The notes under the pieces: generated by a model
Told to the model about the DNA's origin: nothing
The model's database searches: none
What the model saw: the letters and a program-made list of their open reading frames with translations, nothing else
In this document: positions 1-60,659 of the stretch, piece after piece
Layout: each line of letters starts with the position of its first letter
How positions within the stretch are numbered: position 1 is the stretch's first letter
NCBI GenBank assembly: GCA_964234715.1
Contig: OZ174283.1
DNA length: 64,000 nt
Strand: one strand, 5' to 3'
Source: Podarcis melisellensis
Lineage: Eukaryota
Made by a program: the position numbers and the translations under genes

Positions 1-1080
1 TTACCCACCTTCTCTGTCTTAAGTGTGTTTTTTTCTTTTCAACTTCTGCGTCCTCCATCTTTGCTATCTAAAAGCTTTCTTTTGGTGAACTTGTAACAGC
101 TTAACTCTTGTGCAGTTCTTCAGTGACAATTGGTTTTATTTTTCAGAAAACAATCCTTTTAGACATTGTTTATGGAATATTACAGCTTCAGTGAAACACT
201 GCTCTACCTTCTGAACTGCATCTTCTTTGGTCTCTTTCTATCAAAGCCTAATTCTTTTCTTTCATCACTATGTAGCCTTTTACTTTGCTGAAGTGCTATG
301 CTGGTTTCTTAACGTAATTGTTAGGCAAATTACTCAGGTGGACCAAGTGCCCTACGTTATTGTCTGCTGATTCTTTTCCCTTCATATTTGTTTGCGTTTC
401 TAGGAGCAGGATTTGTAGAATTTTGTAATCTGAAAAGATGTTTGGATGGGGTGGAGATGTCCCATTGCCAGAGTGATGCGCCCTGCTTGCACCTGCTGAA
501 ACTGCAAGCAGGCAGAAGCTACTCCTGACAGTATATTCACTGGCAGTATGTAAGACACTTGAAACATGGCATGTATGGAGCAGGGAGGGGCATAGAGATG
601 AGCCAGTCCAAGCATCCATCAGATCCTAAACTAGCCTGGAGCTAGCACAAACAGTATCAGCACAAATACTGCCAACCCACCTTTCTCTCTGGCTGGCAAT
701 AGCAGCAGTAGCTTTGCTGTTCCATTCAGCCTTGCTGCTCCCTGATGGGAGTTTGGATTCCACCATCATTGTTGGTTGTATTCATCATTAGAGTTAACAG
801 GCATATTCCTGATAGTGCACTAGTGAGGATAAACTTTTGGTAAATGGAAAGAGTCTAAATCACCAGAATTTCACACCAAGAGAGAATTCTTAGGGATCTA
901 TGCATTTTAATTTGCTGGAGTGTCTGGATCATACTTTGGAGCACTGAGAGTGTAATCAAAACTCCCAGCTAGGAGCAGTGAGGCTGAATGGATTTTGTGG
1001 AATACCCATTTAGTTGAGATTAGACAGGCCCATTTCCTGTTGAATTTCAGGTACCTGACAAGGACCTTACTACTTCAGGC
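1..1080 (-). pseudogene. MATR3: Matrin-3-like processed pseudogene (ZnF1 + linker + RRM2, RRM1 missing; stops and frameshifts; continues off the left edge)
   Basis: Manual minus-strand translation. 861-769 gives DLDSFHLPKVYPH*CTIRNMPVNSNDEYNQQ, vs MATR3 [33 protein letters not shown]. 434-402 gives FRLQNSTNPAP, vs FMLQQSTNPAP. ~357-100 gives VGHLVHLSNLPNNYVKKPA*HFSKVKGYIVMKEKN*ALIE/ETKEDAVQKVEQCFTEAVIFHKQCLKGLFSEK*NQLSLK, vs RRM2 LGRVIHLSNLPHSGY...[63 protein letters not shown]. The segments are colinear, with no intron across RRM2. Confidence 0.88.
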
Positions 1081-1179
1081 ATTTAATAAAGTTTGGTGAA
1101 TTATTGTGATTCATTTTACAATTTTATGTATGCTTCTTAGATACTACACTAATTAAGTGTATAAATACATTAAATAAAT

Positions 1180-2900
1180 ATGTGGGGAGACAAACATCTT
1201 CTCAGGGTATGACTGAAGTTCACTGATGGTCAGAACTGCCGCTTCCCCATCTCCCTGGTACTCTGAATACACAGGCTTCCACAGTGAATTATAATTTGTA
1301 TATTCTGGACATAGGCTCCACCACAAGACAGACTATCATATCCCTTTTTAAAATTTAGTTAACTTAGCTGTATTTTATTAAGCATGAAGTGCTCTGGTTA
1401 ATCCTTTTAGGAAATGCTGGTCTAGTAGAGGGGGAGGCATGACAAAATAGGAAAGTGCCACCCTGTGCCTGCCCCTGTCACCCCCCATCAAAGCCTTGCT
1501 TACCAGGGGCGTGGGGCAGTGGCTCCTAGGTTCCAATGAGAACTCCTAGAGCCCTGCAAGAGCTTGCAAGAGCTCACAGGGCTCTTGCCAGGTCTCACCA
1601 GAACCTTGAAGTTGCCACCACTACTTCTCACTTCTATGGCAGGGGCAACCTGTGGCATTATTCATGATTGGCTAGGAACACCAAGGAAGTCACTGTCAGT
1701 ATATCAGTCACATATAGATCCAAGCTTGGTAATTCCTATTTGAAGTTGACTCTTGGCATCCTTTGGTATTGTGTATATTTTGTATCAGAGATGTCTAAGA
1801 AGAAAATTCACACTAAAAAGCTAGGCATTTCAAACAGATACTGCCAAGAAAAAGGGTTCAATAAAGCCCATAGGTTATTCTTCAGCACAGAGTCTTGGGG
1901 GCACTGAATCAGAGATTCACCTCTTTTGCTCTCAGAATGGGTAATAACGAAGCTGAACTATTCCGAAACAAGCCAAGCTGAAAGGTCAGTCCCTAACTAT
2001 TTCCCTCCGTCTGCTCCAATTTGGAAGCACGGCAGACTAGGCTCCATACATGCAGTGTTTGCTTCAGTGGAATCCTTTGCTGTACTGCTTCATTCCACTG
2101 ACTTTTCACTTGGAACACTGTGGATAATTGGTGAATCATTCCGTAGAAGAAAATTCCTTCCCCACTTTCAGATCTCCGTATCACAAAGTGCTTTTGAAAT
2201 TTCCAAACTCAGTGGGGAACTAGGCTGTTTTTCAGGGAAAATAAGATAACTGCCCCACTGTCTGTATTTAAGCCTTTAGCTGCACCTAAAGGGCTCACTG
2301 GATCATAGTCATGGACAAAAGAACCACTGAGTGAATGTAATTTATGGAATGCAACTGGTCTTTTACTAGTACTGGGAGGTTGCGCTTGGAAATTCATCTG
2401 GAACGAGGCCACAGCACAGGGTTTTTCAAAACCAGATTTCCCAACTGCACAAATTCCCCATCAGATACTCCACCCTAAAAAAGCCAGAATGAACACAAAG
2501 CATTCTTTGCTCCTTGTTTACATCCTGTATCAGTGGTGGCTTCTCCACAGGAGTCGTTATTATCTACTGTGCAATAATTAGCAGGACAATCCAATGGCCC
2601 TTGCATTGAGGTAAACTCCAACTCAATGGCACACTGTTACAAGGGCTACTGGGTCATCTTGAAAGTTATCTGTCTAGTCCTGCTGCCTTATCAACTTTGT
2701 GCTGCCAACATTGGTGTCTCTCAAATACCTGACTGCTCCAGTTTTCACCAAGGATGCCTGTTAAGCACAGCTCGGCTGCTGGCTTAAACTGGTCCATTTT
2801 ATGCCACAGTCAATAGGACCTGCTCTGCAGACTTTCAATGCTGATTGCTGTTAACTCACAGAAGAAACAGGACAACTCCTGACACCATATGGTATTATTA
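1180..2900 (-). pseudogene. Probable decayed N-terminal, Ser/Pro-rich extension of the MATR3-like pseudogene
   Basis: Long minus-strand coding-like frames broken by isolated TGA/TAG stops (e.g. SYLIFPEKQPSSPLSLEISKALCDTEI*KWGRNFLLRNDSPIIHSVPSEKSVE*SSTAKDSTE). A motif FHKLHSLSGSFVHDYDPVSP recurs just upstream of ZnF1. No clear MATR3 match, so the boundaries are uncertain. Confidence 0.4.
1430..1660. mobile_element. GC-richer insertion with an internal imperfect palindrome, probable DNA-transposon/MITE relic
   Basis: Composition shift; internal inverted repeat gagccctgcaagagcttgcaagagctcacagggctc at ~1549-1584. Confidence 0.3.
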
Positions 2901-3277
2901 TTTGGGTGTCTTATTGTCCAGCCCTTCAGCAGAACTTAGCCCTGCTTCTACTAAGTTCTTATAGTGAAGATTCACTGTTCATTCTATCTCAGTTTAGAAA
3001 AATATTGTAGGATCAGTAAGAACTCTTTCTTAAGAGCCAGCAGGTTCCTTCTCCTTCCTTCTCCTACATTTCCAACCATCTATATTTCCCAACTGTGCAC
3101 AAAAAGATCCCTGTCTCAGCAACAGAAAAGTTAAAGAACAGGGAGAGAAGATAGCTAAAGATAAGTGACCTAGAAAAGAGAGGATGAGCAGGACTGATAG
3201 ATGTGGTAACAGTGGGCTAGATGGTCTATAAGCCTGGTTCATTTGTGCTCAGCAAGCACTGGAATACAACTTTTAAA

Positions 3278-3656: not shown

Positions 3657-3800
3657 NNNNNNNNNNNNNNNNNNNNNNNNNNNNNNNNNNNNNNNNNNNN
3701 NNNNNNNNNNNNNNNNNNNNNNNNNNNNNNNNNNNNNNNNNNNNNNNNNNNNNNNNNNNNNNNNNNNNNNNNNNNNNNNNNNNNNNNNNNNNNNNNNNNN
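3657..3800. other. Assembly gap (144 N)
   Basis: Run of N. Confidence 1.
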
Positions 3801-7480: not shown

Positions 7481-8538
7481 TGTAGTGATGTAGATTTGAT
7501 GAATATTCATAAAGCTGGGTTTCATCCAGGTAGTGCAGGAAATAGCTGTGTTGAAACAGTACATTTGATAAGACCTTTTCAAACAAAACAAGGACACATC
7601 TAAACAGATTTAAAAAAATACATCTGGAAAAGGTGTGTTGTGGTTTCTAGCCCTTTAAAGCCGTTGTACGCTTCTATTTTTACTGGACTTTTTAGATACT
7701 GTACTGCAGTATTGTAATGCAGTTTGGTACTTTTGCTTGTGAGCAAAGCAGATGGGTGTTTATGGTGCAGAGTATAGAATTTAGAAACAACTGTGGAAAG
7801 GGGACAAAAGTGAAGTTCCATGTGCGAGGGCAGTAACTCTTCAACAAACTGTGCACGATGCATAAAAACAAAGAAACAAAAAACCTTGTCTTCCTTTGCA
7901 CGGAACAAATTCAGTGGAGGTAGCTTGAATTTCTTCAAAGGAGAGACTTGTGCAAGCTGCTTGCCCAAGAAAAATGGCTAGTGTGAGGTCTCTGGATCAT
8001 TACTTCCCTGCATTCTGGCCCAAATATTCCGTCATCTTCTGGATAGATGTGTGTGTCATTAATGCTGATGAGAATTAAGCACACATGGAAAAGACAAGTG
8101 GATCCCATCCTTTCTCTCACGCATTCTGCATTCCTTTACAATGCAAAACCTGGAAGTCCTTGATCGCTGCTGGATGTGTGAAAATGCTGCAGGACCATAG
8201 ATGCTCGCAACATGTTTGTATTAATCACATCTCGTTATGGCTGTCTCCATCTCGACTGGAAAGCTGCACCCGAGAGGCATCGTTTTAAGAGCTGACAGTC
8301 GTGTGGCATGTTCCTTCCTATCCCCCGTTTCAGGGACTTCTGCGAGGCACGCAAATGTGGAGAGCAGCACGGGCTGCTACAATTTCAGTCTTGTCAGGAG
8401 AAAGATTCTTTCCCGACAGTCCAGGAATTGAAGCGCTCGGAAGGAAGTAAATCTTTCCATCTAGATGTATAACGCACACTCGGGGATTTTTTTTAATTTT
8501 ATTTTTTTAAGCGCCCGTCATGATCAGCCAGATTTTAT

Positions 8539-8539
<1 letters not shown>

Positions 8540-8610
<71 letters not shown>
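8540..8610. repeat. (CT)n microsatellite
   Basis: Perfect CT dinucleotide run of ~71 nt. Confidence 0.98.
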
Positions 8611-8615
<5 letters not shown>

Positions 8616-8728
8616 GAACTGCCATAAATAATATATAATAACTCCTTTCCAAATCTTTAAGGCTTAATGTGCTGTCTTTGGAAAAGCTGCTGTTTTGATG
8701 CTGCTCGTCAGCTTGGCAGCCTAGGCTG

Positions 8729-8767
8729 GCGCGCGCGCGTGTGTGTGTGTGTGTGTGTGTGTGTGCA
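8729..8767. repeat. (GC)n(GT)n alternating purine-pyrimidine tract
   Basis: gcgcgcgcgcg followed directly by (tg)n. Confidence 0.95.
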
Positions 8768-8899
8768 ATACGTTCAAAGGGGGGGAGGCACTCTGGCGTG
8801 GTACGTGCCGGGAACAGCGACAGAGCGCGAGACATTTGTGGCCATCAGAAGTGATTTAAGAATCGCCCGAGGAAGCGGGGAAGCTGTGGCGAGCCGCGG

Positions 8900-9106
8900 C
8901 CTCGCAAGGGTTAAGGGACGCCTCGCCCGCCCTCCCCCCCCCGCCTGGGTGTAAACAGAGGAGCCTCAGCCTATCATGTCTGATTGCTGCTCGGTGCCTG
9001 AAGAGAAAGCCAGGCTCGGTAACATGATACATTCTAGACTGGTTCAACTTGGAAGCGCTGCGCTCGGCTCGTCGCGCCCAGACAGCGGAATCGCCGCCAC
9101 GGGAAG
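8900..9106 (+). other. Probable first exon (start approximate), containing an ATG-initiated open frame from 8976
   Basis: Lies in the CpG island and ends at the strong donor AAG|GTGGGT (GT at 9107-9108). ATG at 8976 has A at -3 and is open for 43 codons to the donor: MSDCCSVPEEKARLGNMIHSRLVQLGSAALGSSRPDSGIAATG. Gene not recognised; may be a uORF. Confidence 0.55.
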
Positions 9107-10989
9107 GTGGGTGACTGCGAAGCGACCCTGTTGACCTTACAAGCCGAGGCGGGATAAAGTGCGATTTCTCACCTCGAGTGGAGCCACTTAGAAAGATTTC
9201 AGGCAGAACCGCCAGCGCTGCTCTAGGTAAATGTAGCGGGGTTTTCCTCGCTCCGCTGCTGCTGCTTTTCTGTACATCGCTTGCTCCGGCGTTGCAATGG
9301 GAGGGAGGAGGCTCCGCTTCTCTTTGAATCGGTGCGGAGAGGCTTTGCTGGCGTTTGAAACGAGGTGGCTTTTTTTAACCCCTCAAGGGCTGAGCTGGCG
9401 AAGGCACAAGCTGAACTTTGCAGATCGCTCTTGCCTGCCAGATGCTGTTGCAAGTAGCTGTTTTCTTGCGAGCGAGCCTATTGTCCTTAACAGCACTTTA
9501 AATTTCATTCCTGGGCGAGGATGGGGTTCTGTCTGCCTAGATTGAAATTCACAGTACAGTAATTCCTTTTCGAGCTTTAGGAGTACCACGTTTCGCTATC
9601 CTTGCCTTTTGATGTAGCTCAGATTTTACGCAGGACTCCTCCAGGCTTTTGGACTTGATTAGTGCAAATCTACCGTGGCATTCTGAAAGGGCAGGGTATA
9701 AAATATTTCTAATTATGGAATCACCCGCTTGTGAAAATAGCAGACCTCATGTATGGCATTGGTTAGCAGGCTGGCTTTTCTTGAAAAACAAAGTCCATAA
9801 CGACAGAGCTAACTTTATAACTGCAAATGTAGTGTAGCTTAAAACAGCATGAAAGCAGGCTGGATTGATTTAGAAATAATTGTTAAATGTTTCCTGTAAA
9901 CTCAGGATTACTCTTTGACATTTATTACGGTATCTGGAAAAAATAAGGCATATCAGAGTTTCTGTAAACAGTTGCACATTCCAGTGCTTTTTATTTATAA
10001 TTCTAGCTCCTTTTCTTTCATGTAACTAATACATGATATACACAGAATATATGACTGTGTTACAAAGTCATTCTGTGTTCTTAGAGCTTAATATAATCAA
10101 ATTCATTGCCTAAAGATGGTGTAGTTGAAGATTTGATCCCTTTCCACTGAAGTGGAAATACTTTCAGTAATTGAAAGCAGATTCATGTCTGGAGTTCTAC
10201 AAGCCAAGGTTTTCATTTTCAAAAATAAACCTTTTGTTCTCCAACTTTAAATGCTTGAGTGAAGCATCCAGAGACCACTGTTTGCTTATTGTCTAATGTG
10301 GTAGTTAAGAGCTATTGGAAATACTTTAAGGGAAATGTTTATTAGAATTCAACTTATTTTGGACAATTCTTGGGTTTAGCTTCACTATATATAACATGTT
10401 AAAATACAGAATGTTTTTTATTAATTCTGTTTTTTTACATGCACATTCCATATTTCATGCACATTCTGTTTTTACATAAGCATACAGTGGTGGCAGTTAA
10501 TACATTTCTTCAACCTTTAGCTAATACAGTACTTCAAGCTGATTTCAAAATTGAATTGTGGACTGGATCTTGAGGAACTTTGAAGGGATAGTGGTCTACC
10601 TCACAAACCTGGACAGCTGCTTTTTGTTAACTTTGTTTCCGTTTTCTGGCTATCATCTTCAAAAAAATTCTTTCAAGAATGCTTTTAGTCAATTCAGGAA
10701 GAGTTGGGTGGGAAATAGACATTGCGGACCTTCAGGCAAAGACGGATCTGCTACTGACCTGGTGAGGAAGTAGAAGACAAGGGAGATAAATAGTAGGACC
10801 TGCCTTACCCTTGTAGGCCCTTTAAACAGCAAAATAAATTGACTGAAATTATGTGAGAAAAGTTCCCAAGGATTGGAACATCCAGCACTGCATACATATC
10901 TGTATATAGCTTGTACAGCATTCACAGCATATCATTTGTATTGATTGCCTGATGGAATGAGTCAGTGTTACCTTTTGATCTTTTTACAG

Positions 10990-24200: not shown

Positions 24201-24304
24201 TTTAGTGGAAATACATGGTGTTCAGAAAATGAGACCTGTTTGTGTTTGTTCTGTAGCATAGGGTAAGAATTGAACTTGCCAGGTGTGAAAATCTAATGAT
24301 CACT

Positions 24305-24949
24305 TTTGCTGTTGTTTAGTCGTGTCCAACTCTTCCTGACCCTATGGACCAGAGCACACCAGGCACTCCTGTCTTCCACTGCCTCCCACAGTTTGGTCAG
24401 ACTAATGCTGGTAGCTTCGAGAACACTGTCCAACCATCTCGTACTCTGTCGTCCTCTTCTCCTTTTGCCCTCAATCTTTCCCAACATCAGGGTCTTTTCC
24501 AGGGAGTCTTCTCTTCTCATGAGGTGGCCAAAGTATTGGAGCCTCAGCTTCAGGATCTGTCTTTCCAGTGAGCACTCAGGGCTGATTTCCTTAAGAATGG
24601 AGAGGTTTGATCTTCCATTGGACTCTCAAGAGTCTCCTCCAGCACCATAATTCAAAAGCATCAATTCTTCAGCGATCAGCCTTCTTTATGGTCCAGCTCT
24701 CACTTCCATACATCACTACTGGGAAAACCATAGCTTTTACTATACGGACCTTTGTTGGCAAGGTGATGTTCTTGCTTTTTAAGATGCCGTCTAGGTTTGT
24801 CATTACTTTTCTCCCAAGAAGCAGGTGTCTTTTAATTTCGTGACTGCTGTCACCGTCTGCAGTGATCACAGAACCCAAGAAAGTAAAATCTCTCACTGCC
24901 TCCATTTCTTCCCCTTCTATTTGCCAGGAGGTGATGGGACCAGTGACCC
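24305..24949 (-). mobile_element. BovB (RTE-clade LINE), 5'-truncated
   Basis: Minus-strand ORFs give typical BovB RT C-terminal peptides (GPITSWQIEGEEMEAVRDFTFLGSVITADGDSSHEIKRHLLLGRK; MRREDSLEKTLMLGKIEGKRRRGRQ). (CAA)-type tail; TSD tgatcact at 24297-24304 and 24950-24957. Confidence 0.95.
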
Positions 24950-25589
24950 TGATCACTAGGAGTTGGAATTTAGCATTTGAGGATTTTATCTTCTTCCCAT
25001 TTCTCATTAGGTGAGAACCTAGGTTTTGTGGAAATTTTCATGCCACATGCTTTGGTGACTTTTAGAGAGGTACAGTCTTGTTTGTGGTGGAGCAGGACAT
25101 GCCTTGGCCTATTGCCAAGGACACACTGCATTGGCAGGACATTAAATTCCAGCACAGCATGGCAAGACAGGCACCCCATTTCAATTCAGGAGGTCAAAAT
25201 GTAGAAACTGTCACTTACTGTATTATGAACTGTTCATCAAAATGTTCATCTGAGTGTAAATACTGCCTATCTCTACTGCATTGCTTTCAAGGGGATGCAC
25301 ATTCAGATATTTATTCCTAGGTTGTTTGGTGAGCATTAGCATCCCAGGCCATCCTACTAGCATCTGCCCACAAATACCTAAATTATAGACCCAGAACCAG
25401 AAAACTGCATGGAAACCTCTTGATTGTCTAGCTTCAGGTAGTCAACAGGAAGAAGATTGTTTTAAAAAGAAGTGGTGCTGAAGCAACTGCCATAATGGCC
25501 AGCAAAGATGTGTGGTAGGGGTAAAGAGGCCTGCAATTCCTTTTCATACAAGAGGAATGACCAAAAAAAAGGTCCCATGACCAAAATAA

Positions 25590-59599: not shown

Positions 59600-60659
59600 G
59601 GATAGATGGTGGCTAACAGATTGAATCCTGACAAGACAGAAGTACTGTTTTGGGGGGACAGGAGGTGGGCAGGTGTGGAGGACTCCCTGGTCTTGAAAGG
59701 GGTAACTGTGCCCCTGAAGGACCAGGTGTGCAGCCTGGGAGTCATTTTGCACTCACAGCTGTCCATAGAGGCACAGGTCAATTCTGTGTCCAGGGCAGCT
59801 GTTTACCAGCTCCATCTGGTACGCAGGCTGAGACCCTATCCGCCTGCGGACTGTCTATCCGCCTGCGGACCAGAGTGGTGCATGCTTTAGTTATCTCTCG
59901 CTTGGAGTACCGCAATGCGCTCTATGTGGGGCTACCTTTGAAGGTAGTACTCGCTTGGAGTACCGCAATGCGCTCTATGTGGGGCTATCGGAAACTACAA
60001 CTAATCCAGAATGTGGCAGCTAGACTGGTGCCTGGGAGCAACCACCGAGACCACAAAACACCGGTCTTCAAAGACCTACATTACTCCCAGTACATTTCCG
60101 GGCACAATTCAAAGTGTTGGTGCTGATCTTTAAAGCCCTAAACCAGCCTTTCTCAACTTGTGGGTCCCCAGATGTTGTTGAACTACAATGTTGGTGAACT
60201 CCCATCACCCCTAGCTAGCAAGGCTAGAGCTCAGGGGGTGATGGGAGTTGTAGTCCAACAACATCTGAGGACCCATAGGTTGAGAACCGCTGCGAAACGG
60301 CCTCGGTCCAGTATACCTGAAAGAGCATCTCCACCCCCATCATTCCACCCAGACACTGAGGTCCAGTGCCGAGGGGCTTCTGGCAGTTCCCTTGCTGCGA
60401 GAAGCCAAGTTACAGGGAACCAGGCAGAGGGCCTTCTCGGTAGTGGCTCCTGCCCTGTGGAATGCCATCCAACCAGATGTCAAAGAGAAAAACAACTACC
60501 AGACTTTTAGAAGACATCTGAAGACAGCCCTGTCTTAGGGAAGCTTTTAATGTTTGACAGATTATTGTATTTTAATATTTTGTTGGAAGCCGCCCAGAGT
60601 GGCTGGTGAAACCCAGCTGGATGGGCGGGGTATAAATAATAAATTATTATTATTATTAT
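59600..60659 (+). mobile_element. L2 LINE, 5'-truncated (RT C-terminus plus 3' UTR)
   Basis: ORF peptides NRLNPDKTEVL...SLGVILHSQLS and VVHALVISRLEYRNALYVGLPLK...KLQLIQNVAARLV. 3' end ggaagccgcccagagtggctgg...gggcggggtataaataataaa(tta)n. Confidence 0.93.
60144..60292. mobile_element. hAT-type MITE nested in the L2
   Basis: cagcctttctcaacttgtgggtccccagatgttg...caacatctgaggacccataggttgagaaccgctg splits the L2 sequence aaagccctaaac/ggcctcgg; right TSD copy degenerate. Confidence 0.88.

Follow-up and report, generated by a model that had tools for sequence, protein, structure and literature searches.

The first 855 nucleotides of a 64 kb stretch of lacertid lizard DNA, which was analysed as a whole and is called the window, carry the remains of a Matrin-3-like coding sequence on the minus strand. 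These remains are probably those of an ancient, 5'-truncated processed pseudogene of MATR3. In such a history a MATR3 mRNA, or a fragment of one, would have been reverse-transcribed and then inserted, long before the split of the sampled lizard species. The visible copy would begin shortly before zinc finger 1 (ZnF1) and run through RRM2 past the window edge. PRI and RRM1 would have been lost by later deletion, or the template would have been an exon-skipped transcript. The sequence has drifted since, and it now has stops, frameshifts and deletions as well as about 240 additional nt.

In human Matrin-3, a protein of 847 amino acids, the domains follow one another as ZF1-PRI-RRM1-RRM2-ZF2 (Coelho et al. 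2015, PMC4365034). The PRI motif, GILGPPP, lies between ZF1 and RRM1 and is invariant in reptiles, and the splicing activity of Matrin-3 requires PRI together with one or both RRMs (PMC4365034). MATR3 is highly conserved in vertebrates and has at least 16 exons. ZnF1, STNPAP and RRM2 all lie within about 720 nt, as would be expected of a processed copy when the parent has this many exons. From ZnF1 to the region after RRM2 the copy is contiguous within about 850 nt, with a single stretch of about 250 nt with GT..AG-like ends inside. RRM2 itself is contiguous and has no gap of intron size, which agrees with the preliminary description, where no intron was seen through RRM2.

Matrin-3 identity of the minus-strand segments

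The window itself served as the null for the motif scans, which covered all six frames of the 64 kb (127,996 positions). We found that the three colinear Matrin-3-like segments, ZnF1, the STNPAP stretch and RRM2, fall on the minus strand within window 1-855 (Table 1), and that each is the best or only match of its motif in the six frames. The preliminary description had named the same three colinear segments and had given the Matrin-3-like extent as 1-1080; the segments stood, and the extent was reduced to 1-855 as nothing MATR3-like was found in 856-1080 or further upstream.

Table 1. Parts of the Matrin-3-like copy, with window coordinates
Feature	Position	Strand	Basis or remark
Zinc finger 1-like segment	772-855	-	motif scan, six frames of 64 kb
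ZnF1-STNPAP interval	438-765	-	about 330 nt
STNPAP stretch, LFRLQNSTNPAP	402-437	-	STNPAP itself 402-419; six-frame word count
Linker, 46 nt	356-401	-	NKYEGKRISRQ and a stop in one frame, NMKGKESADNN in the next; frameshift
RRM2-like domain	136-355	-	PDB match and motif scan
Post-RRM2 region	1-135	-	NQLSLKNCTRVKLL.., then ..SPKES.. in another frame

A provisional 31-residue ZnF1 motif of human MATR3 scored 83 at its site and 42 at the runner-up in the six frames, which makes this segment a lead. STNPAP occurs once in the 127,996 six-frame positions, against 0.002 occurrences expected from composition, and HLSNLP likewise occurs once in the six frames (323-340), against 0.009 expected. For RRM2, a 33-aa stop-free piece (237-139) was searched against PDB. 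Its sole match with an E-value of 10 or below was the Matrin-3 RRM2 (1x4f/7fbv) at E 0.031, with 14 of 32 residues identical, and the check for a better match to a non-matrin protein therefore came out in favour of Matrin-3. When the 32 residues of this PDB match were scanned against the six frames of the window they scored 70 at 139-234 on the minus strand, and the runner-up site scored 37. The 12-mer that the preliminary description had picked out scored 35 at 254-286 on the same strand, with a runner-up of 26. Identity in the best segments of the copy is about 44-59%.

Several searches of the same region gave no match. Pfam, run on 11 separate pieces of the broken copy, returned no relevant family, and Rfam had no match in window 1-3000. 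The N-terminal half of RRM2, the STNPAP piece and the post-RRM2 piece, searched separately against PDB, had no Matrin-3 match.

It could be argued that the similarity is a matter of chance and that there is no Matrin-3-derived sequence at the locus, since the single E-values are weak (0.031), Pfam is blank, and an equally weak, probably spurious match to HGSNAT falls in the same region. However, three independent motifs are unique or top-ranked among 128,000 six-frame positions, and they share a strand, follow the order of the protein and fall within about 720 nt. On these grounds we regard chance similarity as excluded, with a residual probability that is close to nil. Sequence comparison thus supports a locus derived from Matrin-3 and no closer to another RRM protein.

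Anatomy of the copy and its extra stretch

A three-frame translation of window 1-1200 placed the ZnF1-like, STNPAP and RRM2-like parts each in another minus-strand frame. The ZnF1-like segment reads DSFHLPKVYPH, a stop and CTIRNMPVNSNDEYNQ; carried through to the following stop (855-766) it reads DSFHLPKVYPH, a stop, CTIRNMPVNSNDEYNQQ and a stop. Going by the C-x2-C motif, the second zinc-ligand cysteine has presumably changed to arginine. We take the stretch LFRLQNSTNPAP to be the part of MATR3 that stands just before the PRI motif. Read from 355 to 136, the RRM2-like region gives ..VGHLVHLSNLPNNYVKKPA, a TAG stop, HFSKVKGYIVMKEKN, a second TAG, ALIER, a frameshift at 230/231, ETKEDAVQKVEQCFTEAVIFHKQCLKGLFSEK and a TAA stop. 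About 5 codons were presumably deleted after LSNLPNNYVKKPA, as judged against human RRM2.

STNPAP and RRM2 are separated only by the 46 nt of the linker, too short a distance to accommodate the PRI motif and RRM1, which together span about 125 codons. The PRI motif GILGPPP had no match in any of the six frames of the window, and positions 360-518 gave no PDB match to the Matrin-3 RRM1. One possible PRI remnant, RALGPPE in frame 1 (336-356), was rejected in favour of HLSNLP, a stronger reading that overlaps it in a different frame. An assignment of ZnF1 by eye to about 540-600 (PYMPCFKCLTYCQ) was also dropped, as the motif scan puts ZnF1 at the position given in Table 1.

Behind RRM2, the last row of Table 1 is presumably colinear with the basic, serine-rich region that follows this domain, a placement made by eye; a search of this region against PDB gave no match. 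Since the copy seems to continue beyond position 1 of the window, its 3' part is unseen, and any poly-A tail, target-site duplications and ZF2 would lie outside the window. At its other end the copy looks 5'-truncated. The N-terminal region of MATR3 comprises about 280 residues, and 5' truncation is common in retrocopies made by LINEs. We also observed an inverted repeat, 721-771 with 942-992, that flanks the ZnF1-like segment; its arms are 51 nt long, 80% complementary and 170 nt apart, and it has no other copy in the window.

The interval between ZnF1 and STNPAP is longer than in the parent. In human MATR3 this spacing is about 93 nt (about 31 codons), and thus roughly 240 nt of the interval are extra. 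The interval is single-copy, with no second copy in the window and a flat, single-copy contig depth. Splice-like ends, AAG/GTGGGT at 682/681 and TTTTCAG/A at 430/429, enclose about 250 nt. By a reading of the translation, excising 681-430 fails to restore the MATR3 frame. The extra sequence may stem from an intron that was retained or from an insertion that came later, and it counts against a retrocopy to the extent that its GT..AG-like ends could mark an intron remnant, as in a DNA-level duplicate or a semi-processed copy.

Two stop-free stretches of the minus strand overlap this interval. The first, of 109 codons (299-625), is not unusual, as many stop-free stretches of at least 100 codons occur in the window. 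The second, of 72 codons (403-618), contains the HGSNAT-like match at 469-615 (HGSNAT residues 474-522, E 0.076, about 41% identity), which is probably due to chance. An HGSNAT-like reading was set aside in view of the blank Pfam result, an in-frame stop right after the only candidate acceptor and a 1-nt indel at 607 in relatives.

Disablements, relatives and age

Five in-frame stops were found in the copy, at 820-822 (TAG), 766-768 (TGA), 296-298 (TAG), 248-250 (TAG) and 136-138 (TAA), together with at least two frameshifts, one in the linker at about 360-390 and one at 230/231. The preliminary description had called the copy dead and highly diverged, with multiple stops and frameshifts, and these lesions and the low identity of the RRM2 piece agree with it. 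We infer that the copy is now without protein-coding function.

Relatives were examined by aligning contigs from four runs to window 1-3000, the organisms being coded A (the window's species), H, B and I. The DNA runs of at least seven other organisms contain about 52-57% of the sampled 31-mers, which points to a divergence of about 2%. Organism H has a single contig over the whole of 1-3000 with 67 mismatches, and organism B has a contig over 1-1702. We found that in H and B alike two additional bases (TC) follow place 230 and bring ALIE-RETKEDA into one frame. Since TC is present in both, the frameshift at 230/231 goes back to a 2-bp deletion peculiar to the window's species. The two TAG stops of RRM2 behave otherwise. 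Among the differences listed for H and B, which are about 2% diverged, none falls at 296-298 or 248-250, and those lesions are therefore taken to be older than the split, on the assumption that the list is complete up to about place 1586. Each of the species examined, all of them close relatives, has a broken copy. A and H differ by 2.0% within 1-1000 and by 2.35% in 1001-3000; the copy thus diverges at the rate of its flank, which indicates no present constraint.

Short contigs from runs that were guessed to be RNA, with a depth of 2-3.6, cover 451-723 in H and 645-873 and 950-1108 in I, the latter organism being about 4.5% diverged. These putative RNA contigs represent at best background or intronic transcription, and are uninformative on function.

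The divergence K on the lineage of the copy is about 0.3-0.4, as compared with a pairwise 0.022 for A and H. This ratio would make the copy some 30 times older than the A-H split and far older than the sampled genus-level radiation, although the estimate is crude, as it is based on few codons and as identity was taken to the Matrin-3 sequence in the solved structure and not to lizard MATR3. A divergence this high is unusually old for neutral DNA that can still be recognised, and it leaves room for a diverged parent or for an episode of coding evolution.

Other features of the window were recorded in passing. Positions 3657-3800 consist of 144 N, an assembly gap or a mask. In 2417-2900 the summed contig depth of the DNA runs rises from about 13 to 70-107 and loose ends are numerous, indicative of fragments of high-copy interspersed repeats. 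Two stop-free stretches, 24296-25037 on the minus strand and 59606-60535 on the plus strand, resemble by eye the tail fragments of LINE reverse transcriptase (e.g. ..VRIVKAMVFPVVMYGSESWTIKKADR and ..LEYRNALYVGLP..). Positions 8001-10000 are CpG-island-like, with a GC content of 0.47-0.50, a CpG observed/expected ratio of 0.73-0.79 and (CA)n and (GA)n microsatellites. This region, at a distance of about 7 kb from the pseudogene, probably represents a promoter.

Neutral decay and alternative origins

The preliminary description had proposed that the copy shows signs of a former functional life, and had taken the conservative substitutions in RRM2 as a sign of selection. We simulated neutral codon decay for the 32-residue RRM2 stretch at the observed identity (about 0.45; K about 0.4 per site). 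Replacements with a BLOSUM62 score above 0 made up 7 of the 18 observed (39%), as against 27-28% in the neutral simulation, and the mean BLOSUM score of replacements was -0.33 observed and about -0.6 neutral. Conservative replacements are thus more frequent than under neutrality, as selection would predict, but the surplus lies within chance (P about 0.2, a rough binomial estimate), so the substitutions do not serve as a sign of selection. RRM2 has 3 stops in 74 codons, RRM2 and ZnF1 together have 4-5 in about 102, and neutral decay yields 3.0-3.3 per 100. Stops are thus no rarer than under neutrality, which is not what a long coding life would predict.

Searches of protein collections for an intact relative were also negative. 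The RRM2 piece had no real relative among 1.84 billion protein representatives; as these are clustered at 50%, a close MATR3 paralogue could have stayed hidden, and the blank carries little weight. The only match in that library, P0001, is a protein of 1004 aa with a tandem repeat of about 69 residues; it is evidently a translated satellite that was reached by summing weak stretches, and is unrelated to Matrin-3. Region 63-107 of a 107-aa ORF, compared with a collection of 5.8 billion proteins, gave no candidate with three shared 5-mers, and an exact look-up of seven ORFs of the window in the protein collection found none of them present. No report of MATR3 retrocopies in reptiles was found in the literature. 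The proposed signs of a former functional life therefore fell away: neutral simulation reproduces both the stop density and the conservative share, no difference is listed at the RRM2 stops in H and B, and no intact relative was found among the representatives. The positive evidence offered for a functional past is thereby removed. A former functional life is unsupported rather than refuted, and a short functional phase may have occurred. We infer that nothing seen requires the copy ever to have been functional.

Two other origins were weighed against that of an ordinary processed pseudogene. The locus may instead be what is left of a duplication at the DNA level or of a matrin paralogue that was lost (a unitary pseudogene), with 681-430 as a shrunken intron. 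The splice-like ends that enclose about 250 nt between ZnF1 and STNPAP would fit such an origin, and the high divergence could mean an old paralogue instead of an old insertion. However, within about 720 nt every other exon junction expected from ZnF1 to the region behind RRM2 is closed, removal of 681-430 leaves the MATR3 frame unrestored, and the motifs match MATR3 itself. We consider this origin unlikely.

We give about as little weight to the possibility that the copy was a retrogene that was expressed, was held under long purifying selection as an RRM1-less matrin-like protein and died later, in which case intact orthologues may survive in other reptiles. For a copy that can still be recognised, the divergence is high (14 of 32 residues identical in the C-terminal half of RRM2), one frameshift is young and lineage-specific and points to an ancestor with fewer lesions, and short putative RNA contigs lie on 451-723, 645-873 and 950-1108. 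Yet the density of stops and the proportion of conservative replacements agree with neutral decay, none of the differences listed for two further species falls at the stops 296-298 and 248-250, and the copy is missing PRI and possibly RRM1, which are parts needed for the splicing activity of Matrin-3. Moreover no related protein was found among the representatives and no word-sharing ORF in the collection of 5.8 billion proteins, and the RNA contigs have a depth of only 2-3.6 and come from runs whose RNA label was guessed. A more particular form of this possibility, which we hold to be more doubtful still, is that the copy is the corpse of a matrin-like retrogene without RRM1 and PRI that arose from an exon-skipped MATR3 transcript and was functional in an early squamate ancestor, and that intact, unannotated orthologues may survive in another reptile lineage.

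Our data fit better with a processed pseudogene of MATR3. Like Matrin-3, the copy has a putative ZF1-like part, STNPAP and an RRM2-like part in the same order, with RRM2 as the sole PDB match. Unlike Matrin-3, it is without an open reading frame, PRI or RRM1, its N-terminal region is undetected, and its ZF2 would lie off the window. It resembles the LINE-mediated processed pseudogenes of housekeeping RNA-binding protein genes in being an apparently contiguous copy of coding sequence that the parent has on many exons, in its apparent 5' truncation, in its many stops and frameshifts, in being fixed and common to related species and in evolving at the rate of its flanks. It differs from them in an internal loss of about 125 codons (PRI, RRM1), an internal extra of about 240 nt and an unusual divergence.

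The estimated age predicts relics of the copy at the orthologous site in other squamates. If distant reptiles carry an intact orthologue, this would be an unannotated matrin-family gene without the PTB-interaction motif and RRM1, which would be moderately interesting. As it stands the finding matters little, as it is a further old processed pseudogene from a highly expressed gene for an RNA-binding protein. At most, the copy may help to mask the locus during annotation and to mark the common ancestry of lacertids.
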